From the IMG/VR virus record IMGVR_UViG_3300032675_000001, positions 124,001 to 188,000 of that record: DNA of 64,000 bases. One strand, written 5' to 3'. The notes under the pieces were generated by a model. It had not been told where the DNA came from and did no database searches. It saw only the letters and a program-made list of their open reading frames with translations. A program made the position numbers and the translations under genes. Each line of letters starts with the position of its first letter. Position 1 is the stretch's first letter. This document shows, one piece after another, positions 22,001 to 59,213 of this stretch.

Positions 22001-22444
22001 AGCCGGGTCATTCCATAGAACTGGAATATTACTCAAGTTAAAACCGTTGATGTCCGTGATATTTTGCGTGGTTGATACGCTCGTTACCTTGAGATATCCT
22101 TGGGCAGCTAAGTTACGTTTTGGTGTATATCCGACAAGATTGGCAAGTTTAATAACTGAGTCTCTACGCTCAGCAGTGTCCATAAAGTTTTCGCGAGCAT
22201 TTAAGTCATCACGAAAAGCAAGACCTTGGCCCATGAAAGCAATAACATCCAAGAGGGCAATAAATTCTGACGATTCAGTATAATCATTGAAAGTTTCTGG
22301 ATAATACAGACGTAGATAGTCTACGAAACTCTTACGAAGTGTTTCGTAATCATAGCTTTGAAAGTCAGCCTGTTGGTATGTCTGATAGATTGTCTTCCAA
22401 TCGTTTACTCCAAACAATGCTGATTGTCTTGAACTTGTTGCCAT
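19073..22444 (-). CDS. Baseplate wedge subunit, T4 gp6-like
   Basis: DFxSYDYETLR, RENFMDTAERRDSV..LA..VGY.P and QNRMVNGEDY motifs; lies next to gp25. Confidence 0.85.
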   Translation of the reverse strand: MATSSRQSALFGVNDWKTIYQTYQQADFQSYDYETLRKSFVDYLRLYYPETFNDYTESSEFIALLDVIAFMGQGLAFRDDLNARENFMDTAERRDSVIKLANLVGYTPKRNLAAQGYLKVTSVSTTQNITDINGFNLSNIPVLWNDPANPNWLEQFNTIFNAAIINSQRIGKPGNTQDILGVTTSEYAIQIAPNALPIIPFNATIDNQGMNFELVSVTSVNQDYIYEIPPAPTGQFNMVYRNDQLGFGSPNTGFFFYFKQGTLQNYDFSLQQQISNQIIPIGTIEGINNTDTWLYQINSDGTRTPWVQVDNIYANAYLQSPTTLNPLFSVYSGVNDTVSYVFGDGVFSQIPVGNFRSYVRSGNALTYTIDPTEMSGLSVSFTYIDNTGRAQTLTLALSLQTSVSNAQARETITDIKQRAPLRYYTQNRMVNGEDYSNFPYTLYSSIIKSTAVNRSSVGVSKNLDLLDPTGKYSSTNSFGSDGALYQDNTDGTLTLTINTTSDIISFFTNNLASVLGLNRANQYYIQNYPRYAVNSTVGPGTVYWQTSTVDTGAETGYLYTYVQAAQIPMTVGTYSSSNLKYVTTGAICQFSAPTGYYFDSNNRLVAGIPGPNNSTSVWTTVLNVIGDGSNNGIGSFSNGSGPVQVNGYLPSGVILTQVIPVFDNIISSANIQEAIIRMELQQSFSLVFNNSLPINQDRWSISTYNDPAAFVNLQSTGNNNYIVYYNALTYYFGSVSDTRFTFDSNQVVYDPYSGQILQDFVNVLGINSQFGNSVPLGQDTSLNIVGQTVESDGYVNDFQVEVAATDVNNRQLILNPDFFSNITGYVNGSTNVGVYVFFETVVDPLNLTRDYIVPSSAVSYQYPTISQIEVVKYDYPVGQLFYAYAENNFYTSVQDPTVITPSYTMVIQPQYTMLPGRQGLSYQYRHNSNNTNRIDPVVTNIIDLYLVTQSYYTQYTNWIQDTTNTIPKPDVPTINELSQDYPLIQDYKMLSDSVILNSVVFKPLFGAKAAPALQGTIKVVPAANTSASNSEIQSAVLTAMNNYFNINNWNFGDTFYFSELSAYLHNECGDLISSAVLVSNDPTQPFGDLYEITCLPYEIFVNAATANDIMVIAALTPAELQVR

Positions 22445-31691: not shown

Positions 31692-32585
31692 GTGGCGATT
31701 AAACCAAAGAAACCAATAAACTACTTAAACAATAGAGACATTCTCAAAGAGATACACAAGAGCAAGGCAACATACTGTTATTATACCCAACCAGAGTATC
31801 ACATGTATGATCTGATTATTGATGCTCCGGAAAGTTCAATAGAGTTTAGCCTTGAATACGCACTTAAAGATGAACAAATACAGACTGCAAAAATAGTTAG
31901 AGCGGCAAGGTTATCACAGGAATCAGAACAGAAAATTCTTCCAGATTCTATCCCTACACAAGATTTAGTTTTTCGCGTTATGACTTGGGATCACATTCCG
32001 GTATCACAGAAGCAACCAAGAAAGACCACCAAGAAGAAAACCGCCAAGGACATCATAGCATTTGACGAAGATGATGTTGAGGACTTTTCAGACTTAGAAG
32101 ATAAGTCAACCAAAGGCGAGGTGGATGATATGGTTCACGTAAAGGTTAACTTCCCTCCATTCCAACATTTTAAACTTGATGAAACCAACACATTTAGATG
32201 TGTTGGTAAATCTCATTGGGTTGATGGCATTGAGAATGGACACTTTTCTAAAGATCACGGCAACATCACTAACAAGTTAGCTCGTATGTATATGATGCTT
32301 TGTGAGAAGTATGCTATGAAGTTCAACTGGCGCGGCTACACTTACAATGATGAAATGAAGGCGAGTGCCGTTTTACAGTTAACTTATGTCGGTCTACGTT
32401 TCAACGAAGCTAAATCGGCAAACCCATTTGCCTATTATACAGCAGCAATCACGAATAGCTTTTGCCGGGTGTTAAACACGGAAAAGCGCAATCAAAGCAT
32501 TCGTGATGACATTCTTGAGATGAATGGATTGAACCCGTCATTCTCGCGACAGATGAGTACGCCAAAGGCACCGATCATAGAATAA
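31692..32585 (+). CDS. Late-transcription sigma factor, T4 gp55-like
   Basis: NYLNN.D.L.EI; NWRGYTYNDEM; FNEAKSANPFAYYT; adjacent to gp47/gp46 as in T4-like phages. Confidence 0.85.
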   Translation: MAIKPKKPINYLNNRDILKEIHKSKATYCYYTQPEYHMYDLIIDAPESSIEFSLEYALKDEQIQTAKIVRAARLSQESEQKILPDSIPTQDLVFRVMTWDHIPVSQKQPRKTTKKKTAKDIIAFDEDDVEDFSDLEDKSTKGEVDDMVHVKVNFPPFQHFKLDETNTFRCVGKSHWVDGIENGHFSKDHGNITNKLARMYMMLCEKYAMKFNWRGYTYNDEMKASAVLQLTYVGLRFNEAKSANPFAYYTAAITNSFCRVLNTEKRNQSIRDDILEMNGLNPSFSRQMSTPKAPIIE

Positions 32586-39854: not shown

Positions 39855-39951
39855 TTCAGTTCCTCATAAAAAATGGAGTATTTACTAGTAATAAATAGTT
39901 ACGTAATATTTAGTGCTCAAAAAGTAGCAAAAAATAAAGTTCGGATTGACA

Positions 39952-42900
39952 ATGGACGCAGACTTAATTGCTCAGATAAATGATAAGCTTAAAGAGATGA
40001 ATGACTTGCTTACTAAGCAAGGTTCTGTTATTACAAGTCAAGTAAATGCAATAAACAGTTCTACATCAGCAACTAAAAATTTGTATTCGTCCACTCAAAC
40101 CCTATCAAATTCAGAGAAAGAGGCTGATTCCACCTATACTGGAGTTTCTAAAAAAAGTGAAGCTGCGGCAAAAGCATCTTCTGTTATGGATGAATCTACC
40201 ACTCAGCTTACTAAGGCATTGAATGACGGGAGCACCGCCGTCCTCGGCTTTGCGCACAGTATGTTGGATACCACTCCGGGCTTAACAAAATACGCCAGAA
40301 GTGTTACCGATATGGCCCTTGTTGTTTCTGACCTTGCCGCTCCATTTGGGCTGTTAGGTAAAGCAGCGGGCGGAATAGTGGCTATTCTCGGTACTCTTGT
40401 GGGTGCTTCATTTAAGTATTCAGATGCTGCTGTAAAAAGTTACGACGAGATATCAAAGGCTGGGGCTGGCATAGGAGAAAGTGCTGATAGCTTTTTAAAG
40501 CTTGCACATCAGGCAAATTTATCATCTCAAAACATGGGAATACTGTCAAAAGGAGTAACTGACTTAGGTGATAAGCTTTTATTCTTGGGTTCAACTACGT
40601 CAAAGGGCGCTGAAACCTTTGTTAAAATGGCTTCGTTTAACGACAAGACCTTAAAGCAATACAGAAATCTAGGTTTTACTCAACAGGACCTTATTGAGTC
40701 TCAAGAAAAATATTTAGAATTGCAGGCACAATCTGGCGCTGATATGAGAAAAAGCCCACAAGAGTTGCAGAAGGCTTCTCTTGAATGGATTGACCAACAG
40801 AATGAACTTGCTGAACTAACCGGAATCAATGCAAAAACTCAACAAGAAGCATTAGCTAAGGCTTTAGCTCAGGCCAACTTCCAAGCATATATTACCGGAG
40901 AAGAACAAAAGAAAAATGATGCCATCAAAAGGGGAGATACCGCATTAGCTGCTGAAATAGAACAACGAATAAAAGTAAAGAAAGAAGCAGCAACCTATGC
41001 GGAAGCAACATACGGTGCAGTAAAAGCCACCGCCATTCTTCAAGGTATATCTACAGATGGTGCAACAGTAATAGGACAGAACCAAGCCGCTCTTATGCGT
41101 AGTGGTCAAAATGTTGCAGAATATAATGAAATGTTGAATAAAGGTCAAAGTGTAGTTAAACGTATGTCTTCGGATAACGTTAATGCTATAGACCAATATA
41201 GAAAAAACTATGGTGAAATGGGTCAGGCTGCTGGTGAAGCATCCAGAAACATGATGAAAATCAACATGATTGACAATCAATCAATCGCAGCAGCCGCAAG
41301 AGACTCTCAACTGAAAACTACAGCAGGAAAGAGACAACAAACAAAAGAAGAACAAGAAGCTGCAGCCGCCCTTGAACGTGAGAAAAAATATAATGGCGAA
41401 ATCATGGCTAATAGGGCGCAGCAGGAACAATATGAACGTCAAATTCGTCAAGCACTTGATCCTATACTAGGAAAGTTATCAGATCAAATCAATGTACTTG
41501 TTTTAAAGCTTCAGCCGGTGATCACTAAAGTTATCGGTCTAATCAGTAAGAATATGAATTATGTAATTGATGTCGCAAAAGGTTTAGCAGTAACGTTTGG
41601 TATTATGTTTGGTGCGGTAGCGATAGGTAAAGTAGTAGGGTCAGTAAGATCATTTAAAGATGGTTTTTCTAAATGGAGAAAAGGTGAAAGTGGTGCAGTA
41701 GGTAGTGCAAACAATGCTGCTTGGGTAGTTTTTGATGAAAAGAGTGAAGTATTAAGTAAATTGTCAGGTGGAGGAGGAACTTCCGGGATACCCAAAGTTA
41801 GAAAAGCAGATTTGCTTGATAAAAATGGTAAAGTTTTACAAGGTGGCGCACTGCAAGAGAGAATGAAAAAGCTGGCAAGACAGCAAGGTCTTTCTGGGCA
41901 TACGGAAAATAGTGAACAAGAACTTGGTGGAACATTAGGCAATTTAGTTGATGTACTAAAATACGCTTCCAAAAATGCAGCAGATATTATAAAAGGTGGT
42001 GCAGCATTAGGACTTTCTTTAGCCGCTGTGGGTGGTGGAGCCGCCGCCGCCATATGGATTGTGGGTAAAGCTTTACCAACTTTTGCAAATGGTATGAAAT
42101 CGTTCAACGAGGTTAATGGTAAAAATCTTGAGGGCGTTGGCATAGGGTTGGCTGGAATCGGAAGCGGCATCCTAATGATGTCTAGTGGCGCAGTATTGGG
42201 CGTTTTAAGTACTATTGCAACATTGGTTGGTGGAAAAACCCCATTACAAAAAGCGGCAGATGAACTTTATCAGTTCCAAAAGCTAAACATAGATTCTAAA
42301 AAAGTTAAAGCAAATGGAGAAGCTGCTATAGTATTTGCTAAAGCACTAGCTGGTGCTGTGGCTATATCTGAGTTCAGTAAGCTTACTGACAGTTTAAATG
42401 GTTTTTTTGAGTCTAAACCTCCTTTTAAGGATTTTGAGGATTTCTCAAAACTAAACATAAATGAACCTAAAGTAAAAAATAATGCTACAGCATTCAAGGA
42501 GTTTGCCGAAGCGATGGATTCATACAAAGGTGGTGGTACCGTTGGTACTGTAACTACCGCTATAGCTGAATCTGTTGCTAACCATTTCAAGGTAAATCCT
42601 CCTATCAAGGAATTTCAGTATTTTTCAACATTGAAGATTGATCCTATTCAAACAAAAAAGAATGCAACAGCATTCAAGTATTTTTCTGAGGCAATCGCAG
42701 AATACAAAGGAACTAATAGTGGGGTAATAGACTCACTTAATGCTCTCATCGGAAGCTCGTTGAATAAGTTGTTCAATTTGGATGGGCCGATAGATTCTTT
42801 TGTAAACTTCACAAACAAGTCGTTTGGTCCAAATGCAGAAAAAAATGCTGACGCTTTCTACAAATTTGCTTCGGCTATGGGAATACTGTCAGGTTCAACT

Positions 42901-43797
42901 AATGCAACTGGCTCGGCAAACTCCGCAGTAAACGGGGTGGTTGGAGCTATAGGCGGTGCACTAAGTTCCGGTGCAACTATATTGGGCGCTGCGGCAGGTG
43001 CGGCAGCAGATTGGGTTTCTAGCGTATTCAAGTTAGGAAAACCAAAACCAGAATATGTTGGTGTTATGCAGATCGCAAAAAAATCTGGTGATCCTCATCC
43101 GGAAATAACTGCAGCACAGTGGGCATTGGAATCCGGATGGGGTAAACATATGTCTGGTAAAAACAACCCATTTGGGCAAAAAGCAAAAAAGGATAAAGGT
43201 GGAAATCCTATAGAGCCAGCCACTTTACGCAGAACGCGAGAAGTTATAGGAGGAAAGGAGATATTCATCAATGATTATTTCAAAGATTATCCTACACAAG
43301 ATGCTGCAATTGCTGAACATGCACAAAAGTGGACAGCAAGAAAAACCCAGCCGGGATCATCCCCGCTAGAAGCTGCCGCAGCAATTAAAGCGGCAGGATA
43401 TGCCACTGACCCAAATTATGTTAAATCATTGGCTAATATTGTTGCAAGTAATGGTATTGATCCAAAAGCGCCACTGAAAGCCGCAAAAGGTGGTATTTTT
43501 GATGGTCCAATAACTGGATATCCAATGGAACTTCACGGAACTGAAATTGTAGTACCAATGGATAAAGACTCCTTACTAAAAAGACTGGCCACACAAAATC
43601 ATGACGAACAGGAGGATTTGTTACATTCACTTATGTCGCCTGAAACAAAAATCCATCATGAAACAGAATCTGATGTTATTGTAAAAATGGATACGGAAAT
43701 GAAGATGGTTTTACTTGATAAGTTAAGTAAAATGCTATCGGTCATTGATAGTAGACATGAAACTGCTAAAAAAATACTACAACACACACGTACATAA
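39952..43797 (+). CDS. Tape-measure-like protein 1 with a C-terminal GH73 glucosaminidase (FlgJ-like) domain
   Basis: Long helical Ala/Lys-rich body with hydrophobic segments; AAQWALESGWG, NNPFGQK and GYATDPNY motifs; ATG 39952 aligns with the paralog start. Confidence 0.75.
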   Translation: MDADLIAQINDKLKEMNDLLTKQGSVITSQVNAINSSTSATKNLYSSTQTLSNSEKEADSTYTGVSKKSEAAAKASSVMDESTTQLTKALNDGSTAVLGFAHSMLDTTPGLTKYARSVTDMALVVSDLAAPFGLLGKAAGGIVAILGTLVGASFKYSDAAVKSYDEISKAGAGIGESADSFLKLAHQANLSSQNMGILSKGVTDLGDKLLFLGSTTSKGAETFVKMASFNDKTLKQYRNLGFTQQDLIESQEKYLELQAQSGADMRKSPQELQKASLEWIDQQNELAELTGINAKTQQEALAKALAQANFQAYITGEEQKKNDAIKRGDTALAAEIEQRIKVKKEAATYAEATYGAVKATAILQGISTDGATVIGQNQAALMRSGQNVAEYNEMLNKGQSVVKRMSSDNVNAIDQYRKNYGEMGQAAGEASRNMMKINMIDNQSIAAAARDSQLKTTAGKRQQTKEEQEAAAALEREKKYNGEIMANRAQQEQYERQIRQALDPILGKLSDQINVLVLKLQPVITKVIGLISKNMNYVIDVAKGLAVTFGIMFGAVAIGKVVGSVRSFKDGFSKWRKGESGAVGSANNAAWVVFDEKSEVLSKLSGGGGTSGIPKVRKADLLDKNGKVLQGGALQERMKKLARQQGLSGHTENSEQELGGTLGNLVDVLKYASKNAADIIKGGAALGLSLAAVGGGAAAAIWIVGKALPTFANGMKSFNEVNGKNLEGVGIGLAGIGSGILMMSSGAVLGVLSTIATLVGGKTPLQKAADELYQFQKLNIDSKKVKANGEAAIVFAKALAGAVAISEFSKLTDSLNGFFESKPPFKDFEDFSKLNINEPKVKNNATAFKEFAEAMDSYKGGGTVGTVTTAIAESVANHFKVNPPIKEFQYFSTLKIDPIQTKKNATAFKYFSEAIAEYKGTNSGVIDSLNALIGSSLNKLFNLDGPIDSFVNFTNKSFGPNAEKNADAFYKFASAMGILSGSTNATGSANSAVNGVVGAIGGALSSGATILGAAAGAAADWVSSVFKLGKPKPEYVGVMQIAKKSGDPHPEITAAQWALESGWGKHMSGKNNPFGQKAKKDKGGNPIEPATLRRTREVIGGKEIFINDYFKDYPTQDAAIAEHAQKWTARKTQPGSSPLEAAAAIKAAGYATDPNYVKSLANIVASNGIDPKAPLKAAKGGIFDGPITGYPMELHGTEIVVPMDKDSLLKRLATQNHDEQEDLLHSLMSPETKIHHETESDVIVKMDTEMKMVLLDKLSKMLSVIDSRHETAKKILQHTRT

Positions 43798-47747: not shown

Positions 47748-49541
47748 ATGGCATTTAAAAAGAAATTCATTAATAAGAGTGGTGTTTCCTCACCAATCTC
47801 CGGTGCAAATAGCAATGCTGGTGCATGGAACGGTTCACCGGGTCAGAATGGTATGCCAACTGGTGGCTGGAACAATGATGATTTCGGCTACAAGAATTAT
47901 ATGTCAAGGCTTCCGGAAGTCTATACTGGGCACCCAAACAGAATTGAACGATACAATCAGTATGAAATGATGGACGTTGATGCGGAAATAAATGCATGTT
48001 TGGACATTCTGGCAGAGTTTTCAACCCAACGTAACGAACACAATAGAACTCCATTTGAGATTGAGTTTAGAGATGAACCTACTCCACATGAAGTAGAACT
48101 TCTTACCAAGCAGCTACAGCAGTGGTGCAAACTCAATGAGTTTGACGTTCGTATGTTCAAGATATTCCGTAATGTTGTTAAGTATGGCGACCAAGTATTT
48201 GTTCGTGATCCAGAAACATTCAAGTTGTTCTGGGTTGATATGGTCAAAGTTATTAAAGTTATCGTTAACGAATCAGAAGGTAAGAAACCGGAACAGTATG
48301 TTATTAAAGACATCAATATTAACTTACAGAACCTGTCAGTAGCACAAAAAACAAATACCGACTTTGCTGCTAATCCAGCAACAGGACTTGGTGGATCAGG
48401 CGGAGGCACAAACACTCCATATACTGTTCCAGCAATGCCATATAATACATCTGGATCACGTTTTACTCTTGGGCAATCAGAATCGGCCATTGACTCAAAA
48501 CATGTTGTTCACCTTTCATTAACAGAGGGTCTTGATCGCTTCTGGCCATTCGGACAGAGCATTTTAGAGAACATCTTCAAAGTTTATAAACAGAAAGAAC
48601 TGTTAGAAGACGCTGTTCTTATCTATCGTGTTCAGAGAGCGCCGGAACGTAGAGTCTTTAAGATTGACGTTGGTAACATGCCATCACACATGGCAATGGC
48701 ATTCGTTGATCGTGTCAAGAACGAAATTCACCAGAGACGTATTCCCTCCATTTATGGTGGACAGTCTGTAGTTGATGCAAGCTATAATCCGCTGTCAATG
48801 AACGAAGACTATTTCTTCCCTGTTACGGCAGAAGGTCGCGGTTCAACTGTTGATATTCTTCCGGGTGGACAGAATCTTGGTGAAATTGATGACTTGAAAT
48901 ATTTCAACAATCGTCTTGCTCGTGGTCTTCGTGTTCCAAGTTCATATCTGCCAACTGGACCAGATGATAATACTACTCCAATGAATGATGGTCGTGTTGG
49001 TACTGCCATGATTCAAGAGTTCAGGTTCAACCAGTACTGCGAACGATTACAGAACTATATCTGTTTGAAACTTGATGAAGAGTTCAAGTTATTCTTGCGT
49101 TGGAGAGGGTTTAATATTGATACTGGTCTCTTTAGTATCATGTTCAACGCTCCACAAAACTTTGCATCTTACCGTCAGGCAGAAATGGATACTGCTCGTG
49201 TTTCCACTTTTGCTACGATGGAAGCATTTCCGTATATCTCAAAACGTTTTGCACTTGAAAGATTCCTAGGTCTTACCGAAGAAGAAATCAAGAAAAATGA
49301 AAAGATGTGGGCAGAAGAAAATGCTGATGAGCAGCTTGATGAACCACAGGGTTCCGATCTTAGAAACATTGGTGTTTCAACTGGTGACTTTGAAGCAGAT
49401 TCGGATACCGCAGATCAGATTGAGCAATCACAATCCGATATGGATGGAGAAATGGGTGTAGCTGGTCCAGTAGCATCAGACATTGGTGCACAAGGTGCAG
49501 CAGGAGGCGGCGCAGCAGCCGGTCCAGTCGGTAATAGTTAA
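47748..49541 (+). CDS. Portal protein, T4 gp20-like
   Basis: LLEDAVLIYRVQRAPERRVFKIDVGNMP; EDYFFP...GRGS.V..LPGGQNLGEIDD. Confidence 0.95.
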   Translation: MAFKKKFINKSGVSSPISGANSNAGAWNGSPGQNGMPTGGWNNDDFGYKNYMSRLPEVYTGHPNRIERYNQYEMMDVDAEINACLDILAEFSTQRNEHNRTPFEIEFRDEPTPHEVELLTKQLQQWCKLNEFDVRMFKIFRNVVKYGDQVFVRDPETFKLFWVDMVKVIKVIVNESEGKKPEQYVIKDININLQNLSVAQKTNTDFAANPATGLGGSGGGTNTPYTVPAMPYNTSGSRFTLGQSESAIDSKHVVHLSLTEGLDRFWPFGQSILENIFKVYKQKELLEDAVLIYRVQRAPERRVFKIDVGNMPSHMAMAFVDRVKNEIHQRRIPSIYGGQSVVDASYNPLSMNEDYFFPVTAEGRGSTVDILPGGQNLGEIDDLKYFNNRLARGLRVPSSYLPTGPDDNTTPMNDGRVGTAMIQEFRFNQYCERLQNYICLKLDEEFKLFLRWRGFNIDTGLFSIMFNAPQNFASYRQAEMDTARVSTFATMEAFPYISKRFALERFLGLTEEEIKKNEKMWAEENADEQLDEPQGSDLRNIGVSTGDFEADSDTADQIEQSQSDMDGEMGVAGPVASDIGAQGAAGGGAAAGPVGNS

Positions 49542-49558
49542 CAGGGATAAATAACTTT

Positions 49559-49798
49559 ATGAACTTAAACGAGATGTTTGATCCGCCGATTCAGGGCTTC
49601 CAAGATGTCAATTCTGACAATAGTAAACCTGTGTGGAGAACATCCCGTAAGACTAAACTTACTCTCAAGCAGATTCGCAAACTTAGACGTATGCTTGATG
49701 TAAGAAATTATGAAAAGAAAAAGCATTTAGAAAAGGTTCGTAAACAGTATGGACCAAGACCAGAAGACACCGCAGGGGCAGCACCAGCAGTGGCTTGA
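49559..49798 (+). CDS. Small basic prohead-associated protein
   Basis: Between portal and core genes; RKTKLTL.QI.KLR motif; has its own late box. Confidence 0.6.
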   Translation: MNLNEMFDPPIQGFQDVNSDNSKPVWRTSRKTKLTLKQIRKLRRMLDVRNYEKKKHLEKVRKQYGPRPEDTAGAAPAVA

Positions 49799-50782: not shown

Positions 50783-51421
50783 ATGGCTTTGTATCTTAGA
50801 GAGAATCTGACATTTGACCGAGCCAATATGGTAGTCGAGTCAGTGTCAGAAGGCGATGACAAACTGAAGTCCCTCTATATGAAGGGTATCTTCATTCAAG
50901 GCGGGGTAAAGAACGCAAACGAGCGCATTTACCCCGTCAATGAGATTGAAAACGCAGTTCATACTCTCAATAAGCAAATTCATGAAGGCTATTCTGTTCT
51001 AGGCGAAGTCGATCACCCAGATGATCTAAAGATCAATCTTGATCGTGTATCACATATGATTACTCAAATGTGGATGGACGGTGCAAATGGGTTCGGTAAG
51101 CTAAAAATTCTCCCAACTCCAATGGGCGATCTTGTAAAGACAATGTTGGAGTCAGGGGTTAAGCTAGGTGTATCCAGTCGTGGTTCAGGTAACGTAAACG
51201 ACTTAGATGGCCGTGTCAGTGATTTTGAAATAATCACTGTCGATATTGTTGCACAACCAAGCGCGCCAAACGCATATCCTAAAGCAATTTATGAAGGACT
51301 TCAAAACATGAAGTACGGCCATAAAGTACTTGAGATTGCTAAGGACGCTCAAGGCAACAAACAAGTACAGAGATACCTTGCTGAGGAAGTAAAGCGCCTC
51401 ATCAACGATCTCAAATTATAA
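50783..51421 (+). CDS. Prohead protease, T4 gp21-like
   Basis: N.N.R.YP, GEVDHP, GVSSRGSG and DIVAQPS motifs. Confidence 0.93.
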   Translation: MALYLRENLTFDRANMVVESVSEGDDKLKSLYMKGIFIQGGVKNANERIYPVNEIENAVHTLNKQIHEGYSVLGEVDHPDDLKINLDRVSHMITQMWMDGANGFGKLKILPTPMGDLVKTMLESGVKLGVSSRGSGNVNDLDGRVSDFEIITVDIVAQPSAPNAYPKAIYEGLQNMKYGHKVLEIAKDAQGNKQVQRYLAEEVKRLINDLKL

Positions 51422-51432
51422 GGGGAACAAGC

Positions 51433-52539
51433 ATGTTAGATGCTATCAAGCCACTACTAGAAAGCGGACTTATCAACGAGGACGTGGGCAGAGAACTAAA
51501 CGAAGCCTGGGAATCCAAGTTGAACGAAGCTCGTAGTCAAGTTCGTGCGGAACTCCATGAAGAGTTTGCACAACGTTACGAACATGACAGAATGGTTATG
51601 GTAGAATCCCTTGACAAGATGATCACTGCCCACCTCGCAGATGAAATTGCAGAATTTGCATCTGAGAGAGCAGCAATGAACGAAGACCGAGTAAAAAATC
51701 AAATCAAACTTCGCGAAAGCGCAACTAAGTTCAATGATTTCATGGTTACTAAACTAGCCGAAGAAATCCGTGAATTGCGTGCAGATCGCAAAATTCAAAT
51801 GGAAAATCAGAAGAAGTTAGAACAGTTTATTGTTCATGCTTTGGCACGTGAAATCAAAGAATTTGCGATTGATAGAGAAGCCGTTGTTGAAGCAAAGGTC
51901 AAGCTCGTTGCAGAAGGTCGCCAACAGATTGAAGCACTTAAAGAAAAGTTCATTTCTGAAAGTGCCAAGAAGGTTAGCACCATGGTTGGAAATCATCTTA
52001 AGGGTGAACTATCACAACTCAAAGAAGATATCAAAATCGCAAAAGAAAACAATTTCGGTCGCAAGATTTTTGAATCATTTGCTGGTGAATTCTCAGTAAC
52101 TTATCTCAATGATAAGGCTGAAACCCGCAAAGTGATGAGTGCTCTTGCACAAAAAGACCGTCAACTCGCAGAAGCCAAAAAGCAACTACAAAATGCTGCT
52201 AAATTGGTAGAAAGCAAGGACCGCGAAGTTCGCATTATCAAGGAATCAACTCAGCGTCAGAAGACAATGGATGAACTATTGTCAACTCTCAATGAGCAAA
52301 AAGCCGAAGTAATGAGAAGTTTGCTAGAAAGCGTTCAGACACCTAAGTTGAAGAATGCATTCGACAAATATTTACCAGCGGTACTTAATACAGGTACAGC
52401 ACCAAAGGCAACAAAGGCACCTTTGACTGAATCTGTTATTGTAGAGGCAACTGGTAATAAAACTGCCCAGAGACCAACTGAAGTCGATGAATACGAAAAA
52501 GACAACGTAATCGACATCAAGCGCCTGGCGGGGCTTTGA
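51433..52539 (+). CDS. Prohead scaffold protein, gp22-like
   Basis: Coiled coil between protease and capsid genes; several L/I/V-x-ES putative protease sites. Confidence 0.8.
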   Translation: MLDAIKPLLESGLINEDVGRELNEAWESKLNEARSQVRAELHEEFAQRYEHDRMVMVESLDKMITAHLADEIAEFASERAAMNEDRVKNQIKLRESATKFNDFMVTKLAEEIRELRADRKIQMENQKKLEQFIVHALAREIKEFAIDREAVVEAKVKLVAEGRQQIEALKEKFISESAKKVSTMVGNHLKGELSQLKEDIKIAKENNFGRKIFESFAGEFSVTYLNDKAETRKVMSALAQKDRQLAEAKKQLQNAAKLVESKDREVRIIKESTQRQKTMDELLSTLNEQKAEVMRSLLESVQTPKLKNAFDKYLPAVLNTGTAPKATKAPLTESVIVEATGNKTAQRPTEVDEYEKDNVIDIKRLAGL

Positions 52540-52565: not shown

Positions 52566-53762
52566 ATGTCAAAAGTACTATTAGAAAGCCGTTGGAGCGA
52601 AACAAAGGAAGCTCTGCTTGAAGGCTTAAAGGGCAATCGTCGCTCAACTATGGGTGTTATCCTTGAAAACACCAAAAAGCAGTTACTCGCAGAATCTTCT
52701 GCTGGCACGACTACTGCTGGTAATATCGCAACTCTAAACCGCGTTATCCTTCCAGTTATTCGCCGTGTTATGCCAACTGTTATCGCAAACGAACTCGTAG
52801 GTGTTCAGCCAATGACTGGTCCAGTCGGTCAAATCCACACTCTCCGTGTACGTTACGCTCAGTCATTGACTGACAACTCAGCAGCACAGACTTCAGTCGT
52901 TGCTGGTGAAGAAGCACTTTCACCATTCAAGATCGCACAGGCATACTCACGTGTGACTGAAGCAACTTCAAGCACTAACTACTACACTGGTGCTGATACT
53001 GCTACTCTTGAAGGTGACGGCGGTAAGCAAATCTCCGTGCAGATTCTCAGACAGGCTGTTGAAGCCAAGTCACGTAAGCTCCAAGCTCGTTGGACTTTTG
53101 AAGCTGCTCAGGACGCTCAATCACAGCATGGTATTGACGTTGAAGCAGAAATCATGGCAGCACTTGCACAGGAAATCACTGCTGAAATCGATCAGGAAAT
53201 CTTGCTTTCATTGGCAACTCTTGCATCAACTGAATACACTTACAACCAAGCAACTGTATCAGGTACTGCTACTTACGTTGGTGACGAACACGCTGCTCTT
53301 GCTGTTCTTATCAACCGCGTTGCAAACTTGATTGCACAGCGCACTCGTCGTGGTGCAGGTAATTGGGCTGTTGTTTCACCAGCTTCATTGACTGTTCTTC
53401 AGTCAGCAACTACCTCAGCATTTGCTCGTACAACAGAAGGTACATTTGAAGCTCCAACTAACACTAAGTTCGTTGGTACTTTGAACGGTGCAATGCGCGT
53501 ATTCGTTAACTCATATGCTCCTGACACTCAGCCAGTTCTGGTTGGTTATAAGGGTTCATCTGAAACTGACGCAGCAGCATTCTACTGCCCATACATTCCG
53601 TTGATGTCATCTGGCGTTGTCCTTGATCCGTCAACTTTCGAACCAGTCGTTTCGTTCATGACGAGATACGGATACATAGAATTGACAAATACTGCGTCAT
53701 CGTTTGGTAATGCCGCCGACTACGTTGGGGAAATTGCAGTTTCTAACCTTACTTTTCAGTGA
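52566..53762 (+). CDS. Major capsid protein, T4 gp23-like
   Basis: VGVQPMTGP.G.I, AKSRKL.A.WT.E.AQD, EI..EID.E, FYCPYIPL and TRYG motifs; strong codon bias. Confidence 0.95.
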   Translation: MSKVLLESRWSETKEALLEGLKGNRRSTMGVILENTKKQLLAESSAGTTTAGNIATLNRVILPVIRRVMPTVIANELVGVQPMTGPVGQIHTLRVRYAQSLTDNSAAQTSVVAGEEALSPFKIAQAYSRVTEATSSTNYYTGADTATLEGDGGKQISVQILRQAVEAKSRKLQARWTFEAAQDAQSQHGIDVEAEIMAALAQEITAEIDQEILLSLATLASTEYTYNQATVSGTATYVGDEHAALAVLINRVANLIAQRTRRGAGNWAVVSPASLTVLQSATTSAFARTTEGTFEAPTNTKFVGTLNGAMRVFVNSYAPDTQPVLVGYKGSSETDAAAFYCPYIPLMSSGVVLDPSTFEPVVSFMTRYGYIELTNTASSFGNAADYVGEIAVSNLTFQ

Positions 53763-53802: not shown

Positions 53803-53828
53803 GAAAAGGGGGCTTCGGTCCCCTTTTC
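53803..53828 (+). terminator. Rho-independent terminator after the capsid gene
   Basis: GAAAAGGGGGC-TTCG-GTCCCCTTTTC (cUUCGg loop). Confidence 0.85.
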
Positions 53829-53830
53829 TA

Positions 53831-53859
53831 TTGACAAAACCACAAAACTATAGTATTAT
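53831..53859 (+). promoter_or_regulatory. Sigma70-type promoter upstream of the HNH gene
   Basis: TTGACA-17 nt-TATTAT. Confidence 0.6.
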
Positions 53860-53894: not shown

Positions 53895-54650
53895 ATGTTC
53901 AAAGAAAACAAATACACCAAACATTACATGCTTCTCATCGATAATGCAAGAAATCGTAAACTTCCACTAGAGCAGTATAAAGAACGCCATCACATCATAC
54001 CCCAATCATTAGGCGGCTCGAATGATAAATCTAATTTAGTTTGGCTTACTGGACGAGAACATGCACTTTGTCATTGGGCACTATTAAAGATGACAGAAGG
54101 AGAAAATCGTGCTAAAATGTCATATGCATTTAATGGAATGAACGCAGAGAATGAGTTCCAACAGAGATACCATTCTCGAATTATAACGCGAGCATATGAA
54201 CGGCATCGGATTGAACATGCTAAAGTACATTCTGAAAGAATGAAGGGTAAAACTGCGTGGAACAAAGGCAGAAAATTGGAAGGCGAAGAGTTAGAACAGC
54301 ACCTAGAACGAACACGTAACAGAATTATTGATCCAGTTAAACAGGCTGAGGGGCAATTAAAAAGGATTGCTAAAGTAACTGGCCAAAAACGCACAGAAGA
54401 AACAAAAATAAAAATGAGTATTGCTTCAACAGGTAAACTAAAGGGAGCAATGTCAGATGATCATAAAGCCGCCATAAGTGCAAGCGGGAAGGGTAAACCT
54501 AAGAAAGAAGGACATGCTGAAAATGTTCGTAAAGCCAACATAGGTAACGTGTCTATTAACAAAAATGGGATTGAGAAAAAAGTCAAACGTGATACTCTTG
54601 ATCAGTGGTTGAGTGAAGGCTGGAGTCTAGGCGGAAGGAAAAGAAAATGA
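53895..54650 (+). CDS. HNH homing endonuclease (Mob-like) with NUMOD3-like repeats
   Basis: ERHHIIPQSLGGSN...NLV.LT.REH...H; AWNKG and RTEETK.KMS motifs. Confidence 0.85.
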   Translation: MFKENKYTKHYMLLIDNARNRKLPLEQYKERHHIIPQSLGGSNDKSNLVWLTGREHALCHWALLKMTEGENRAKMSYAFNGMNAENEFQQRYHSRIITRAYERHRIEHAKVHSERMKGKTAWNKGRKLEGEELEQHLERTRNRIIDPVKQAEGQLKRIAKVTGQKRTEETKIKMSIASTGKLKGAMSDDHKAAISASGKGKPKKEGHAENVRKANIGNVSINKNGIEKKVKRDTLDQWLSEGWSLGGRKRK

Positions 54651-55165
54651 CTAAAGAAACCTCTGAGGAAAAATTAATACGATATATCAAACGTGATTCA
54701 CTAGATGTAGTAAGGGATCATTATTTTAATACTAGATGGACCTCATACAAAGAGTTAATGGCATATATCAAATCAGCCGGATGGACTAGAGGAGAGTTAG
54801 TTAAAGCTGACCGCCCGAAAGGGAGAGGGGAAGCACGTTGGGAAAAGCAAAGTTTGTATTGGTATCTGACTGGAGGTCCAGATTATTATGATACTATCCC
54901 CGATGACGAAATAGCTGCGTTTGAAGGAGCGATATGTAACAACCTACCAACGATTGTTGTCACGTATCATGGACCATATGAATCGGAAATTATATACAAC
55001 CCCACATTCAAACGTTTATTGCGGTGTGTCAGGGAATCTATTTACGTGAATAAGGACCCGGATCACTGTGGTATAGGTAGGCTGCCTGATGTTGAAATAT
55101 TTGATGATGGCGGAGTCAATCAAGATATCAGATATCAAGTCATAACTTTTTCAATGGATAGCTAA
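54647..55165 (+). CDS. Hypothetical protein
   Basis: ATGA overlap with the HNH gene; no recognisable motif. Confidence 0.6.
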   Translation: MTKETSEEKLIRYIKRDSLDVVRDHYFNTRWTSYKELMAYIKSAGWTRGELVKADRPKGRGEARWEKQSLYWYLTGGPDYYDTIPDDEIAAFEGAICNNLPTIVVTYHGPYESEIIYNPTFKRLLRCVRESIYVNKDPDHCGIGRLPDVEIFDDGGVNQDIRYQVITFSMDS

Positions 55166-55167
55166 CA

Positions 55168-55323
55168 ATGAACAAAAAATTACCACAGTGGAAAGACCGA
55201 GTAGTTGCTGAGAACATACAGGAACTATCAGATCAGGAACTGGCTTCTAGAGTACAACAACATCATGCTGCATGTGTAGCAATTATGAAAAAAATCAAGA
55301 GATTCACCGATGAAAATAAGTGA
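55168..55323 (+). CDS. Small hypothetical protein (51 aa, MNKKLPQWKDRVVAE...)
   Basis: Fills the gap between its neighbours; too short for the ORF track. Confidence 0.45.
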   Translation: MNKKLPQWKDRVVAENIQELSDQELASRVQQHHAACVAIMKKIKRFTDENK

Positions 55324-55618
55324 TTTGTTGACTGAATCAGCAGACTCTATTGCCACATACCTTGCTATTCTAGGACATGACATTGTTTATTATGAGAATG
55401 GTTCCTCTTCGATCAAATCACAGTACATGGACAATCCCACATCAAATAATAAAATGGCAGCAAAAGCCATTCTGAATGACGTTAATCTCAAGATTCTTAC
55501 GTTAATCAGCGACATCGATTTGTGGAACAGATTTGAGGAAGACCCTGACGTGGAAATGATATATAACCGGTTTGTCAACCTTTATAATCAAAACAATGAC
55601 TATATTGAGTCATTGTGA
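55310..55618 (+). CDS. Hypothetical protein with an N-terminal MKISDLLTE tag
   Basis: ORF whose N-terminus nearly matches that of the downstream kinase-like protein. Confidence 0.55.
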   Translation: MKISDLLTESADSIATYLAILGHDIVYYENGSSSIKSQYMDNPTSNNKMAAKAILNDVNLKILTLISDIDLWNRFEEDPDVEMIYNRFVNLYNQNNDYIESL

Positions 55619-55672
55619 CGAGAGTACGTATACATTGGCACGGTGATAACTGTAAACAACGATAAATACACT

Positions 55673-56245
55673 ATGCGTATATCAGAACTCCTCACCGAAT
55701 CAGAAATGTTAGATGAAATCAGCCGTCCCTCGGGCAGAATGGCACAGCATATTTTAAAAAAAGCTGGTTACACTGTGTTAGGTAGTGGTTCAAATGCTGA
55801 CGTATATGCCAAACCTAACGAAAACACGGTTCTTAAATTGTTCAACAATGAAGACACAGCATATCAAGATTTCGTATACTTAACTATTAGTAACCCTAAT
55901 CCGCACTTCCCGAAATTCAAGGGGAAGATGATGAAAGTTACTGATGACTATTCTGCTATTCGTATGGAAAGATTGACTCCTTTACCGGACAATTACGAAA
56001 CAAGATTGTACGCTACGAGAATCTCGCTCTACACAAAACTGATTCAGAACAAATCAGGTCGTGCAGCTAATATGAATACCGAAGAAATAATGCGAGACAT
56101 TGATGAGATTGAAAAAGAACAACCCGGCATCAAATATGCTTGTGCCATCATAGGTAACAATCTCAAAAAGGAAATAATAGACATTCATAATGAGAACATT
56201 ATGATGCGTGGAAATGTTTTGGTCATCACCGATCCGGCCATTTAA
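55673..56245 (+). CDS. Protein-kinase-like protein (probable start 55673, MRISELLTE)
   Basis: Gly loop LGSGSNADVY, VLK, MERL, DIHNENIM catalytic loop, ITDP; late box 4 nt upstream of the ATG. Confidence 0.7.
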   Translation: MRISELLTESEMLDEISRPSGRMAQHILKKAGYTVLGSGSNADVYAKPNENTVLKLFNNEDTAYQDFVYLTISNPNPHFPKFKGKMMKVTDDYSAIRMERLTPLPDNYETRLYATRISLYTKLIQNKSGRAANMNTEEIMRDIDEIEKEQPGIKYACAIIGNNLKKEIIDIHNENIMMRGNVLVITDPAI

Positions 56246-56257
56246 CTAAATATAAAA

Positions 56258-56875
56258 ATGGTAGAAACTGAATTTTACTACATTGATGCACCGCCATACT
56301 CAATGTCAAATGAACTGTTAAACTCATTTGCTGATTACGATTATGCACTGGGAGTACTTCCATTGTGGTGTGGAGTAAATCAGTTCAACAACCAGCAAGA
56401 AAACGTAACGGGTAATACTATATCAGAGTTATATAGAAAAACCACGTTATTCAATGATCAGGAAGCATTCAATCAGATACGATTGAAATGTATGAACCAA
56501 TTCATATTAAATACGATGCTAATCCTCCTTCATCAAAATGCGAATGTTATGTGTGCTGCTCCTGCACACAGACATGGAGGACGAAGAAAAGAAAATGCTA
56601 CCGAATTATTTGATTCTATGCGCTGTGTAACGGTGGTCATTCCTACTAATACTTATGGGCCGTCAACTTCATATTTTTGGGCAAACTATCAGGATGAAGT
56701 ACCCCATGATCCGACCGATCAAACTATAAAAGGGCATATACAAAAAATAAAAATGCCAGACCCCGGCCAGTATCTTATACTAGATTTTGATTCGGTTAAG
56801 ACATTGCATGGAGTGGATAACAGCCTTGGTAACAAAAATGAGTTTCTGTGCTTAATGGCAGAAACTTTCTATTGA
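56258..56875 (+). CDS. Putative 2OG-Fe(II) dioxygenase/cupin-like protein
   Basis: PAHRH proximal motif and distal F....LHGVDN motif. Confidence 0.4.
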   Translation: MVETEFYYIDAPPYSMSNELLNSFADYDYALGVLPLWCGVNQFNNQQENVTGNTISELYRKTTLFNDQEAFNQIRLKCMNQFILNTMLILLHQNANVMCAAPAHRHGGRRKENATELFDSMRCVTVVIPTNTYGPSTSYFWANYQDEVPHDPTDQTIKGHIQKIKMPDPGQYLILDFDSVKTLHGVDNSLGNKNEFLCLMAETFY

Positions 56876-56888
56876 GCGATCACGCTTA

Positions 56889-57257
56889 TCATGCGACTAT
56901 AGTATCCCCATCCACAGTGGTATCTAGTATTGATTTTCTTCCGGTTCTGATTTGTTTATTGTGAATCCTGCTGCAGTTGGCACACATTGTCATCAAATTT
57001 GATACGTCTTTGTTCTTCTTGTTTCCATCCTTGAAAACTAGATCAAGCTGCACTCTGTCTTCGGGAACGAATCCACATTGTTCACATATGTTACCTTTAT
57101 GCTGGAGGTGATTAAATCTACCATTGTATAAGGCTTTGGCGCAATCTACGCAATATTTGTGCCATTGCTGGAATCCGTGTTTGCTTTTTCCATTAGGTTT
57201 AGCAAGAGCAAAACCACAATGTGCACATATGGGACGAGGTTTTTGGTTGGTAATCAT
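56889..57257 (-). CDS. Zn-finger protein with a degenerate HNH fold (probable start 57257)
   Basis: Four CxxC pairs; LDLVFKDGNKKN...NL.T.CANC.R.H. Confidence 0.65.
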   Translation of the reverse strand: MITNQKPRPICAHCGFALAKPNGKSKHGFQQWHKYCVDCAKALYNGRFNHLQHKGNICEQCGFVPEDRVQLDLVFKDGNKKNKDVSNLMTMCANCSRIHNKQIRTGRKSILDTTVDGDTIVA

Positions 57258-57344
57258 CATGTATTTAGGAGAACTGTAGTTCTTTTTTCCGACTTTCAAA
57301 AAACCAAAAAACTATAAATAGTATAAACATAATGGAATCAATAC

Positions 57345-59213
57345 ATGACAGCACAGGTTTTTAATTCGTTAAGTGGTTATTCAGTCGGTATTCCGCCTGT
57401 AACAGTAGTTGACGCTAATGGAAATGTTGTTACTAACGTTTTTACATCTGGAAATGTGTTCGCTAACGTAGTGTATGCAAACACATTTAAATTTTCCAAT
57501 GGACAACCTCTTTCAATATCTGCTGCAGGTTCTAATACGCAGGTCCAGTTTAATAGTAATGGTCAACTTGGTGCAGATGCCAATTTCACGTACACCACTG
57601 ACGGAGAACTTCTCGGGGTAGCGAACATAATTGTTTCGTCTCACACGAATCTTGGAAGCATATCAAATGTTACTATTACCGGTGGCAACAATGGGTACTT
57701 CCTACAAACAGATGGTACTGGAAATTTAACTTGGGCACCAGCAAGCGGTGGCGGGGGCGGAAACGGTTCACCTGGAGGAGCAAACTCGCAAGTTCAGTTT
57801 AACAATGATGGTAATTTTGGAGGTTTTCCTGGGTTCATATTTAATACGACAACATCAACACTGAATTCACCAAACATTACTGCCAACACCATTACTGGTA
57901 ATGTAATAACTTCAAACAGCTTTACTGGGAATTATCTAAGTCAATCCCTGCAATCCAATATAACTTCATTGGGAAATCTAACCTCACTGACAGTTGATGG
58001 CAATGCTTCTTTCGTTGGACCAGGAAAAGTATCACTTGGTTCAGTTTCAAACATTAGTATTACTGGTGGATTCAATGGTTATGTTTTAACTACCGATGGT
58101 ACTGGTAATCTTACTTGGGAAAATCCAGGCAGTGGACAAGGTAATCCGGGTGGTTCAAACACTACTATTCAGTATAACAACAATGGAAATTTTGCTGGTT
58201 CAAATGCTTTTATTTTCAATAGTGTATCAAACTCAGTAACTCTAACTGGAAACCTAACTACAAAAAATATAACATCTAATAACCAAACGGTTTATGGTGT
58301 CATCAACGTAACCGAGAACATAAGTGTTGCTGGATACTACTATGGAGATGGAAGTTACATATCAAATATTCAGGCTAATTTGGCAAACTATGTTTCTCAG
58401 CCATCACAGCCAAATATAACCAGCGTAGGGACATTACTCACTCTATCAGTAACTGGAAACATTCTTACTTCCCAGTACGTAAGTGCAGGAGGCTTCCAGA
58501 CTTCCGGTAGCGTAAATTCTGGATCAATAAACACAAGTGGTATAGCAACTATACACACTTTGAATTCCGTAGGAAACGCAACATTTAGTGGACCAAATGT
58601 AAATCTAGGAAACGTCTCAAATCTTCATATTGAAGGTGGTTTAAATGGATATTTCCTTCAAACTGACGGTCTAGGTGGATTAAGTTGGCAGTCTGTAGGA
58701 AGCGGAGGAGGAAACGCCATTCCGGGCGGTGGTAATACCCAAATTCAATATAACAATGCCGGAAATTTTGCTGGAAGCAGTTACTTCACTTTCAATGATA
58801 ATACAAACACAGTACAAGTTGCCGGAACGTTGATAGCCAATGTAGTACAAGTGGGGTCTGGTTCCTATCAGTTTGGAACATCCGAAGTCTATTTTGCAAA
58901 CAGTTCATCAACTTCAACGCAAGTTATATACACTATTCCAGTATCAGCATGTTCTGGTGTTGACTTTGAAATAATCGCAACGGACTCGGTTGGTCAGCGC
59001 AGACAGTCGGCAAAGTTCTCTTCACTGTATTATGCTGGGGTAGTTGAATACAGCGAATATGCAGGATTGAATATTAATGGAGGAATAGGAAACTTTCAAG
59101 TAGTGTATAATCCAGGTAATGTACTTGTTGCTCCATCACTGGATATGCAAGTAACACCATTCACTTCCGATCCGGTGGTATATAAGATGTTAATAACCAT
59201 ATTGGCCAATTAA
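57345..59213 (+). CDS. Tail fibre-like virion protein
   Basis: Repeats ITGG.NGY.LQTDG.GNL.W (x3) and GxNxQxQ(F/Y)N (x4); Asn/Gly/Thr-rich. Confidence 0.7.
   Translation: MTAQVFNSLSGYSVGIPPVTVVDANGNVVTNVFTSGNVFANVVYANTFKFSNGQPLSISAAGSNTQVQFNSNGQLGADANFTYTTDGELLGVANIIVSSHTNLGSISNVTITGGNNGYFLQTDGTGNLTWAPASGGGGGNGSPGGANSQVQFNNDGNFGGFPGFIFNTTTSTLNSPNITANTITGNVITSNSFTGNYLSQSLQSNITSLGNLTSLTVDGNASFVGPGKVSLGSVSNISITGGFNGYVLTTDGTGNLTWENPGSGQGNPGGSNTTIQYNNNGNFAGSNAFIFNSVSNSVTLTGNLTTKNITSNNQTVYGVINVTENISVAGYYYGDGSYISNIQANLANYVSQPSQPNITSVGTLLTLSVTGNILTSQYVSAGGFQTSGSVNSGSINTSGIATIHTLNSVGNATFSGPNVNLGNVSNLHIEGGLNGYFLQTDGLGGLSWQSVGSGGGNAIPGGGNTQIQYNNAGNFAGSSYFTFNDNTNTVQVAGTLIANVVQVGSGSYQFGTSEVYFANSSSTSTQVIYTIPVSACSGVDFEIIATDSVGQRRQSAKFSSLYYAGVVEYSEYAGLNINGGIGNFQVVYNPGNVLVAPSLDMQVTPFTSDPVVYKMLITILAN

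Follow-up and report, generated by a model that had tools for sequence, protein, structure and literature searches.

The capsid targeting sequence (CTS) of phage T4 is the textbook route for loading arbitrary proteins into a phage head, and an engineering tool, too. In the T4 record, gp24 begins with MAKINELLRES, gp22 with MLKEQLIAEA and gp21 with MNEPQLLIE, and the products of ipII and ipIII both begin with MKTYQEFIAE. The known substrates of the T4 protease gp21 were matched by motif, namely gp24 (MAKINELLRE↓S; arrows denote cleavage), gp22 (MLKEQLIAE↓A), gp23 (FLTE↓A) and the internal proteins (IPs) IPII and IPIII (MKTYQEFIAE) (PMC9026906, PMC3012670). The first ten residues of IPIII suffice for targeting, with residues 8 and 10 governing processing (PMC9026906). 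A further point of reference is the phage T7 protein kinase gp0.7 (T7K), recently shown to disarm many defence systems through mass phosphorylation (PMC13645617). Here, we describe a pair of adjacent open reading frames, ORF-A and ORF-B, that share a CTS-like leader and lie behind the head genes of an uncultivated T4-type jumbo phage. The phage belongs to the Rak2/PA5oct/Vibrio 2.275.O capsid clade, is known from metagenome contigs alone, and has a genome represented by a single contig of 360,683 bp, of which we analyzed bases 124001–188000 (64,000 nucleotides; hereafter, the window). We consider it fairly probable, judging from sequence, that ORF-A and ORF-B encode T4-style capsid-targeted, protease-processed internal head proteins that would be delivered together with the DNA.

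ORF-A (55310–55618, plus strand; 102 amino acids [aa]) starts with MKISDLLTES and ORF-B (55673–56245, plus strand; 190 aa) with MRISELLTES. A sequence-only reading of the window had described the two as adjacent, similarly tagged and otherwise unrelated, and this description was borne out: BLASTP aligned residues 1–10 only, of which 8/10 were identical and 10/10 similar (E = 0.007, in a single comparison). The underlying DNA is identical at just 18/30 nucleotides (nt) and the codons differ (AGT vs TCA for serine, TTG vs CTC for leucine), arguing that the likeness is kept at the peptide level. In ORF-A, the leader (MKISDLLTE↓S) comprises residues 1–9 (55310–55336), and the sole (L/I)-x-E site of the protein is at residues 7–9; the predicted mature part would be a helical bundle of 93 aa (10.7 kDa, pI 4.2). 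Searches with ORF-A returned no Pfam family, no PHROG family and no phage tblastn match, and the ESM Atlas yielded generic helical-bundle look-alikes and nothing else. The leader of ORF-B (MRISELLTE↓S) spans 55673–55699 and is followed by a second site, L-D-E↓I at residues 13–15, immediately before an invariant I-S-R-P. The longest frame of ORF-B opens at a GTG (55643), but its true start is the ATG at 55673, since all orthologues and paralogues begin at that methionine and since a promoter box (see below) falls between the GTG and the ATG. The upstream extension is explained by a remnant (~30 nt; 55636–55665, plus strand; …WHGDNCKQ.[stop]) of the 3′ end of a homing-endonuclease gene, which we recognized by comparing upstream sequences: the gene in question directly precedes the kinase genes in two relatives (L022 and L023), and the stop codon of the remnant overlaps the promoter box.

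The machinery that would recognize such a leader is encoded nearby, as the head module of the window is T4-type, in the order portal, gp67-position gene, a gene for a 283-aa protein, protease, scaffold-like gene and capsid gene. The gene for the T4 gp21-type prohead (head maturation) protease (50783–51421, plus strand; phrog_207, 3.3e-59) lies three genes upstream, and its product, which would presumably remove the leaders, is 34% identical to T4 gp21 (E 1e-20; both 212 aa). A scaffold/core-like coiled-coil protein (51433–52539, plus strand) starts with MLDAIKPLLE↓S and is encoded between the protease and capsid genes, the order seen in T4 and relatives. The gp23-type major capsid protein follows (52566–53762, plus strand; Pfam Gp23, 1.2e-97) and starts with MSKVLLES, so that the L-x-E-S pattern previously noted at both the capsid and the scaffold N-terminus is indeed present (MSKVLLES and MLDAIKPLLES). 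The N-terminal 43 residues of the capsid protein harbor four (L/I)-x-E sites (LLE7↓S, LLE18↓G, ILE33↓N and LAE43↓S), and its alignment with T4 gp23 begins at residue 46; a comparable N-terminal region of T4 gp23 contains PLLE↓G, IFE↓N and FLTE↓A, the last being the point at which gp23 is cut. The closest capsid proteins are those of Vibrio phage 2.275.O (67%), PA5oct (66%) and GAP32 (64%), all of them jumbo phages; relatives, too, have the L-x-E-small motif at the start of both capsid and scaffold proteins, an example being MSQLLTES on the capsid protein of GAP32 and 2.275.O.

The leader is real, N-terminally enriched, and portable between unrelated proteins and between loci. Its pattern, M-[KR]-x-x-[DE]-hydrophobic-hydrophobic-x-E-small, recurs on about ten further unrelated proteins of the genome. 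A scan for leader-type N-termini, which the sequence-only reading had proposed as a check, returned seven ATGs under the strict pattern, each being the first ATG of its ORF; without the methionine, the same pattern had six internal matches in 125,693 residues. Using BLOSUM62 as a neutral score (seed: residues 2–10 of ORF-A), values of at least 15 were reached by 8/505 N-termini versus 156/107,712 internal windows, an enrichment of ~11-fold, and the leader pattern was overall enriched about 11- to 45-fold at first ATGs. The corresponding DNA pattern occurred at nine sites in five related genomes, as opposed to zero for a reversed control. Bearers of the leader include proteins of 208 aa (MKSLKHFIAES), 126 aa (MRAREFITEA), 223 aa (MKISDIFEST), 428 aa (MRAAEFITEE) and 173 aa (GTG start; (M)RAFEFLFED), a 482-aa SleB-type cell-wall hydrolase (MRAKEFITES), a 744-aa Amidoligase_2 protein together with its 863-aa paralogue (MRAKHFLDLYEA), and a DUF6267 protein (METINTVIAEG; MKIREIITES in a relative).

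These genes occupy unlinked loci, at 4 kb, 63 kb, 268 kb and 329–339 kb of the genome. The last of these is a second leader-gene cluster on the minus strand (328817–339374; locus L243), encoding proteins of 223, 352 and 173 aa, the two Amidoligase_2-type paralogues (863 and 744 aa) and the SleB-type hydrolase (482 aa); a Dps/ferritin-like gene (147 aa) in the same cluster is devoid of a leader. In IMG/VR, we found many orthologues of the 208-, 223- and 126-aa families that retain the leader, with its glutamate kept in 55/55, 34/35 and 13/13 distinct sequences. An alignment of six kinase sequences around ORF-B has the glutamate in 6/6, with the hydrophobic pair invariant as well. Taken as a whole, the leader shows no greater conservation than the remainder of each family, invariance being confined to the key positions.

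Cultured relatives allow the comparison to be extended to virions. A homologue of the 208-aa leader family in Atu_ph07 (AUZ94910, that is, gp113; E 5e-8 without the leader) has a frame that extends upstream of the annotated start to MKTLQDYLTES, and gp113 is abundant in virions, where 11 of its peptides were detected, covering 61.7% of the protein (PMC6102473, Table S5). The annotated start of gp113 (84393–85148; L241) looks wrong and should be placed 29 codons further upstream, at MKTLQDYLTES. In PA5oct, of which we read 148 kb along with its annotation, the leader was found on the capsid protein and on gp150 (MKINDIITEG) only, and both were detected in the virion. The homologue of gp150 in the window is the small protein encoded after the portal gene (47748–49541), in the position of T4 gp67 (49559–49798, plus strand), with GATAAATA at 49546–49553, 5 nt before the ATG.

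We next compared the region behind the capsid gene among relatives taken from IMG/VR (L020, L022, L023 and L025). The slot behind the capsid gene and the homing endonuclease varies between relatives, holding different leader-tagged cargo that includes one to three tandem kinases: L020 has a pair of kinases, a GNAT-like protein and one of 98 aa; L022, a 333-kb relative, has three tandem kinases; and L025 has a truncated ORF-A, an inserted gene for a 539-aa protein and a 227-aa protein starting with MRIIEILTES. Ahead of the first cargo gene, L022, L023 and L025 have the endonuclease 3′ end and TATAAATA, the latter at a distance of 5 nt from the ATG, an arrangement of which the window keeps the 30-nt remnant; in L020, TAAATA stands 4 nt from the ATG. 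The ORF-A of L025 (4001–4120) is cut to 39 codons by a stop and followed by the 539-aa gene (4142–5761), which has a weak nucleotidyltransferase-like match; the truncation and the insertion suggest that ORF-A is dispensable and that turnover in the slot is quick. Two candidate assignments were dropped: ORF-A as an orthologue of the 98-aa protein of L020, as BLASTP finds no similarity, and the 227-aa cargo of L025 as an ADP-ribosyltransferase (R…STS…E, by eye), as Pfam lends no support. A variable post-capsid slot with tagged cargo is also what characterizes the T-even IP loci, which, in the passage of PMC3012670 that cites Repoila et al. 1994, comprise diverse proteins with only the CTS conserved.

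As to the cargo itself, the assignment of ORF-B as a minimal T7 gp0.7-type Ser/Thr protein kinase is well supported, with catalytic activity being predicted. The kinase motifs reported in the sequence-only reading were substantiated by three comparisons. ORF-B matches phrog_15752, the T7 0.7 kinase family, over residues 22–188 (1.8e-9); hhalign of the six-sequence alignment against T7 gp0.7 gives a probability of 97.1% (E 6.3e-11; residues 29–189 vs 66–216), aligning the Gly-rich loop and the VLK, D-x-H-x-x-N and ITDP motifs; and G37, G39, K55, D170, H172, N175 and D187 (within D187-P188) are invariant in the alignment. Structural support for a kinase-like fold is moderate, not strong. The AlphaFold2 model of ORF-B (predicted local distance difference test score 70.8) has protein kinases as its best matches by VIA-align, from the N-lobe to the DFG motif (Z 6.3–8.8 over 120–136 residues), and Foldseek retrieved APH and OspG (E 3e-4); that all top matches are kinases or APH agrees with the fold that had been anticipated. 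When the kinase alignment was run as a profile against solved structures, no match was significant, and the Pfam family Kinase-PolyVal (PF18762) was hit below threshold (19 bits vs a cut-off of 27; residues 32–72 only). ORF-B is devoid of the C-terminal shut-off (SO)/DNA-binding domain, its chain ending three residues after the DP motif.

The family to which ORF-B belongs is very large, as a profile search returned 3200 clusters at 50% identity. Its members often occur in tandem arrays adjoining structural genes of T4-core jumbo phages; one kinase of the short form has a T4 gp13-like gene on one side and a giant sheath gene on the other. Rhizobium phage RHph_I1_18, a separate T4-type phage of 171 kb, encodes a gp21-type protease along with a gp0.7-like kinase starting with (M)KSFSEHIAES. 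Some homologues in the library (P0004, P0005, P0008 and P0133) have three to five kinase copies per polypeptide (800–1800 aa), and these multi-copy proteins form a bridge from the stand-alone tandem kinases of the phages considered here to polyvalent-protein architecture.

Expression signals point in the same direction for ORF-B. The late box that the sequence-only reading had placed before this gene is GATAAATA (55661–55668, plus strand; 4 nt upstream of the ATG), the over-represented form in the genome, differing from the T4 box TATAAATA in its first base. We read (T/G)ATAAATA as a probable late promoter because the window encodes a T4 gp55-type late sigma factor (31692–32585, plus strand; phrog_12791, 3e-74; phrog_234, 1.4e-21). 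GATAAATA occurs 58 times in the genome versus ~26 expected, and in 48 cases an ORF follows. It precedes baseplate wedge, virion structural protein, tail fibre and gp67-position (head-core) genes as well as ORF-B, and also four other leader genes (those for the 208-, 126- and 223-aa proteins and the amidoligase); relatives carry TATAAATA where ORF-B has GATAAATA. From these sequence features, late expression of ORF-B is likely.

Two further observations concern the box. In twelve genes genome-wide, GATAAATA is positioned 4–5 nt before the ATG (with 5 nt for TATAAATA in relatives); if the distance from box to transcription start is as in T4, the first transcribed nucleotide would be the A of the ATG or one adjacent to it, and the late mRNAs of these genes could be leaderless. 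In addition, at least eight genes outside the window (genome positions 32563, 40647, 47775, 49830, 61594, 112594, 276696 and 310308) have similar N-termini (MTIY…/MNIY…/MSIY…), each with GATAAATA 58–68 nt upstream; they are homing-endonuclease-like by look, as if a mobile family travels with its own late promoter.

Several independent comparative lines thus make packaging and injection the best explanation for the shared N-terminus. We infer targeting, cleavage, packaging and ejection of ORF-A and ORF-B, as well as the kinase activity of ORF-B, from these comparisons, and propose the following model. The leader M-[KR]-I-S-[DE]-L-L-T-E↓S would act like a T4 CTS: ORF-A and ORF-B would be made late and brought by it into the scaffolding core of the prohead, where the gp21-type protease would cut after the glutamate of L-x-E; the kinase may be cut again after L-D-E15. 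Once mature, the proteins would remain among the DNA inside the head and accompany it into the host. Upon entry, ORF-B would phosphorylate host proteins, among them some that serve transcription, RNA processing or defence, ahead of all phage gene expression, with ORF-A being a small acidic helical injected protein. A broader version of this model—that minimal T7K-like kinases, as a very large family, reach the host ready-made in the capsid by means of a propeptide of variable length ending in L-x-E, as part of a leader-defined effector set—we put forward tentatively, as a possibility. A complex prediction for the prohead protease with ORF-A scored 0.00, which weighs neither for nor against binding.

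A number of observations count against this model. The hydrophobic residues of the leader are in a register one position off that of the T4 CTS. ORF-A has no late box of its own, and upstream of it are a terminator-like hairpin and a promoter of the sigma-70-like kind. The leader pattern has false positives, as an NT5C nucleotidase (MKILDLFEEA), an unlikely cargo, fits it too. Among cultured relatives, a scan of the whole PA5oct record by pattern revealed one further leader protein, gp271 (MKIKEIILEN, with a late box 5 nt upstream), which is not flagged as a virion protein; the leader proteins of PA5oct are too small in number to test whether the leader marks virion proteins. AUZ95307 of Atu_ph07 (MRLSEILEE) is probably absent from the virion table, its gp number having been assigned provisionally by accession order. 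(The start of gp271 [179881–180267; L233/L240] itself looks wrong and should be placed five codons downstream, at MKIKEIILEN, right after GATAAATA.) Finally, the N-termini of the kinases are graded, from MR-LDE-LTRP via MRxxEILxE-LSRP to MRISELLTES-EMLDE-ISRP: the full leader is present in 35 of the 112 short homologues listed, most others starting with MR-LDE-LTRP or similar, and all forms have L-x-E directly before the invariant (L/I)(S/T)RP. Some of the leader motif may thus belong to the N-terminus of the kinase itself. The series fits a reading in which the whole family is processed at this point, with propeptides of 5, 9 or 15 residues, and it also fits one in which the element before (L/I)(S/T)RP is structural and the long leader was added; a 5-residue propeptide, as in the short forms, would fall short of the ten residues that T4 needs. 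T7 gp0.7, which is not packaged, itself starts with MNITDIMNAIDAIK, a similar amphipathic pattern without the glutamate.

These last points feed into an alternative in which the motif is an intrinsic element of gp0.7-like kinases (an N-terminal amphipathic helix followed by (L/I)(S/T)RP), acquired by ORF-A and others through recombination at a cassette boundary formed by the late promoter and first codons, with the kinase acting late in the infected cell, unpackaged. Besides the graded N-termini of its homologues and the start of T7 gp0.7, this view draws on the late box, endonuclease 3′ end and leader that kinase genes and a different cargo gene have in common at the DNA level in relatives, and on T4 itself, where ipII and ipIII are identical over 30/30 nt, so that 5′ cassettes do move. 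ORF-A and ORF-B, with 18/30 nt, are too dissimilar for a recent cassette copy, however, and the leader genes are dispersed over unlinked loci. The other leader proteins are unrelated to kinases and belong to deep orthologue families of their own that retain the leader, the motif matches the propeptides of capsid and scaffold, and a late-made, unpackaged kinase without the SO domain would have no obvious role. We regard this alternative as unlikely.

Less probable still, to our minds, is that the leader serves another N-terminus-dependent process without encapsidation, such as the efficient translation of late mRNAs with a short leader or none, recognition by a chaperone or protease of phage or host (Clp-type proteins encoded by relatives of the genome being an example), or association with a membrane or assembly site. 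The twelve genes with a late box 4–5 nt before the ATG speak for the first of these, as leaderless late mRNAs may be numerous, in which case initiation could be influenced by the first codons, and highly expressed genes commonly have lysine or arginine at position 2. Yet, it is residues rather than codons that are kept, and the invariant part is the glutamate and the hydrophobic pair at residues 6–9, not the first codons; moreover, most leader genes have ordinary spacing and Shine-Dalgarno-like sequences, and the genes with a box spacing of 4–5 nt are mostly without the leader. That the two N-termini are alike by mere chance would have been conceivable from a single BLASTP comparison over as short a stretch as ten residues, but is refuted by the pattern scans and the BLOSUM62 test: the genome-wide enrichment at first ATGs, the nine versus zero sites in relatives and the conservation among orthologues leave next to no room for it. 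Capsid targeting, with the reservations above, is the reading we retain.

The surroundings of the two genes can be summarized briefly. Behind the capsid gene come a G+C-rich, terminator-like hairpin (53803–53828, given without a strand), an HNH homing-endonuclease gene (53895–54650) with a sigma-70-like promoter in front (53831–53859), two small ORFs, ORF-A, ORF-B and tail-fibre genes. Using window positions 54600–57400 as a query, we found no near-identical DNA in the phage collection; IMG/VR contains a 90-kb contig that is 100% identical. Elsewhere in the window, a single ORF of 6326 aa (84–19064, minus strand) adjoins a baseplate wedge gene (19073–22444), and PA5oct has a virion protein of 3857 aa at the matching position. 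A 1283-aa protein (39946–43797) with an endolysin-type domain near its C-terminus (residues ~1023–1203) is probably a virion-associated lysin.

If capsid targeting holds, the mechanism would be the known one of T4, and the interest would lie in the cargo and in the predictive value of the leader for metagenomic jumbo phages. A diverged leader on about a dozen proteins of a jumbo-phage clade would extend the CTS principle beyond T-even phages and allow injected proteins to be predicted, by a simple rule, from the sequence of metagenomic phage genomes. The leader would then define an injected effector set comprising a kinase, a SleB-type hydrolase, an amidoligase, a DUF6267 protein and small acidic proteins. 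Within this set, the kinase homologue would be a new class of cargo, arriving with the DNA and hence acting earlier than that of T7; under the broader, more tentative reading, host defence and gene-expression proteins would be phosphorylated at DNA entry, before phage transcription.

Several features are shared with T4. As with the CTS of IPI, IPII, IPIII and Alt, proteins with nothing else in common have a short leader ending in (L/I)-x-E; genes for a gp21-type protease and a scaffold core lie close by, with capsid, vertex and scaffold propeptides carrying the same motif; and the cargo genes are variable, accessory and partly clustered, like the T-even IP loci. In contrast to the T4 CTS, the consensus here is M-[KR]-I-x-[DE]-[LI]-[LI]-x-E-[ST], with the glutamate at position 9, which is nearer to the gp24 leader (MAKINELLRE↓S) than to MKTYQEFIAE. 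The leaders of the window, unlike those of the T4 IPs, have diverged at the DNA level, and the putative cargo includes enzymes not known among the internal proteins of T4, namely a kinase, a SleB-type hydrolase and an amidoligase.

With T7K, ORF-B shares a homologous core, including the Gly-rich loop, the VxK lysine, D-x-H-x-x-N and the DFG-like motif (I/V)TDP(V), and the kinase part of both chains ends soon after the latter. ORF-B differs in having neither the C-terminal SO/DNA-binding domain nor the 65-residue N-terminal region, the place of which is taken by the leader; jumbo-phage homologues of T7K without the SO domain have been noted (PMC13645617). Moreover, T7K is the product of an early gene and made after entry, whereas ORF-B stands behind a predicted late promoter in the head region and would arrive pre-made. 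Kinase-PolyVal proteins (PF18762) are likewise truncated kinases that lack the C-terminal subdomain and keep the active-site residues, and they, too, are found in tandem cassettes, are predicted to be delivered with the DNA, and have GNAT and other modifying domains nearby (PMC5512222); ORF-B, by contrast, is a stand-alone protein of 190 aa rather than a domain of a giant one, and its proposed route is a CTS-type leader. Lastly, many ejection or inner-body proteins of phiKZ and SPN3US are processed by the prohead protease after a glutamate and ejected into the host, as we propose here, but these phages differ in capsid lineage, cleavage motif (S/A/G-x-E) and the length of the propeptides, which are long compared with the 10-residue leaders described above (PMC5694885, PMC7411985).

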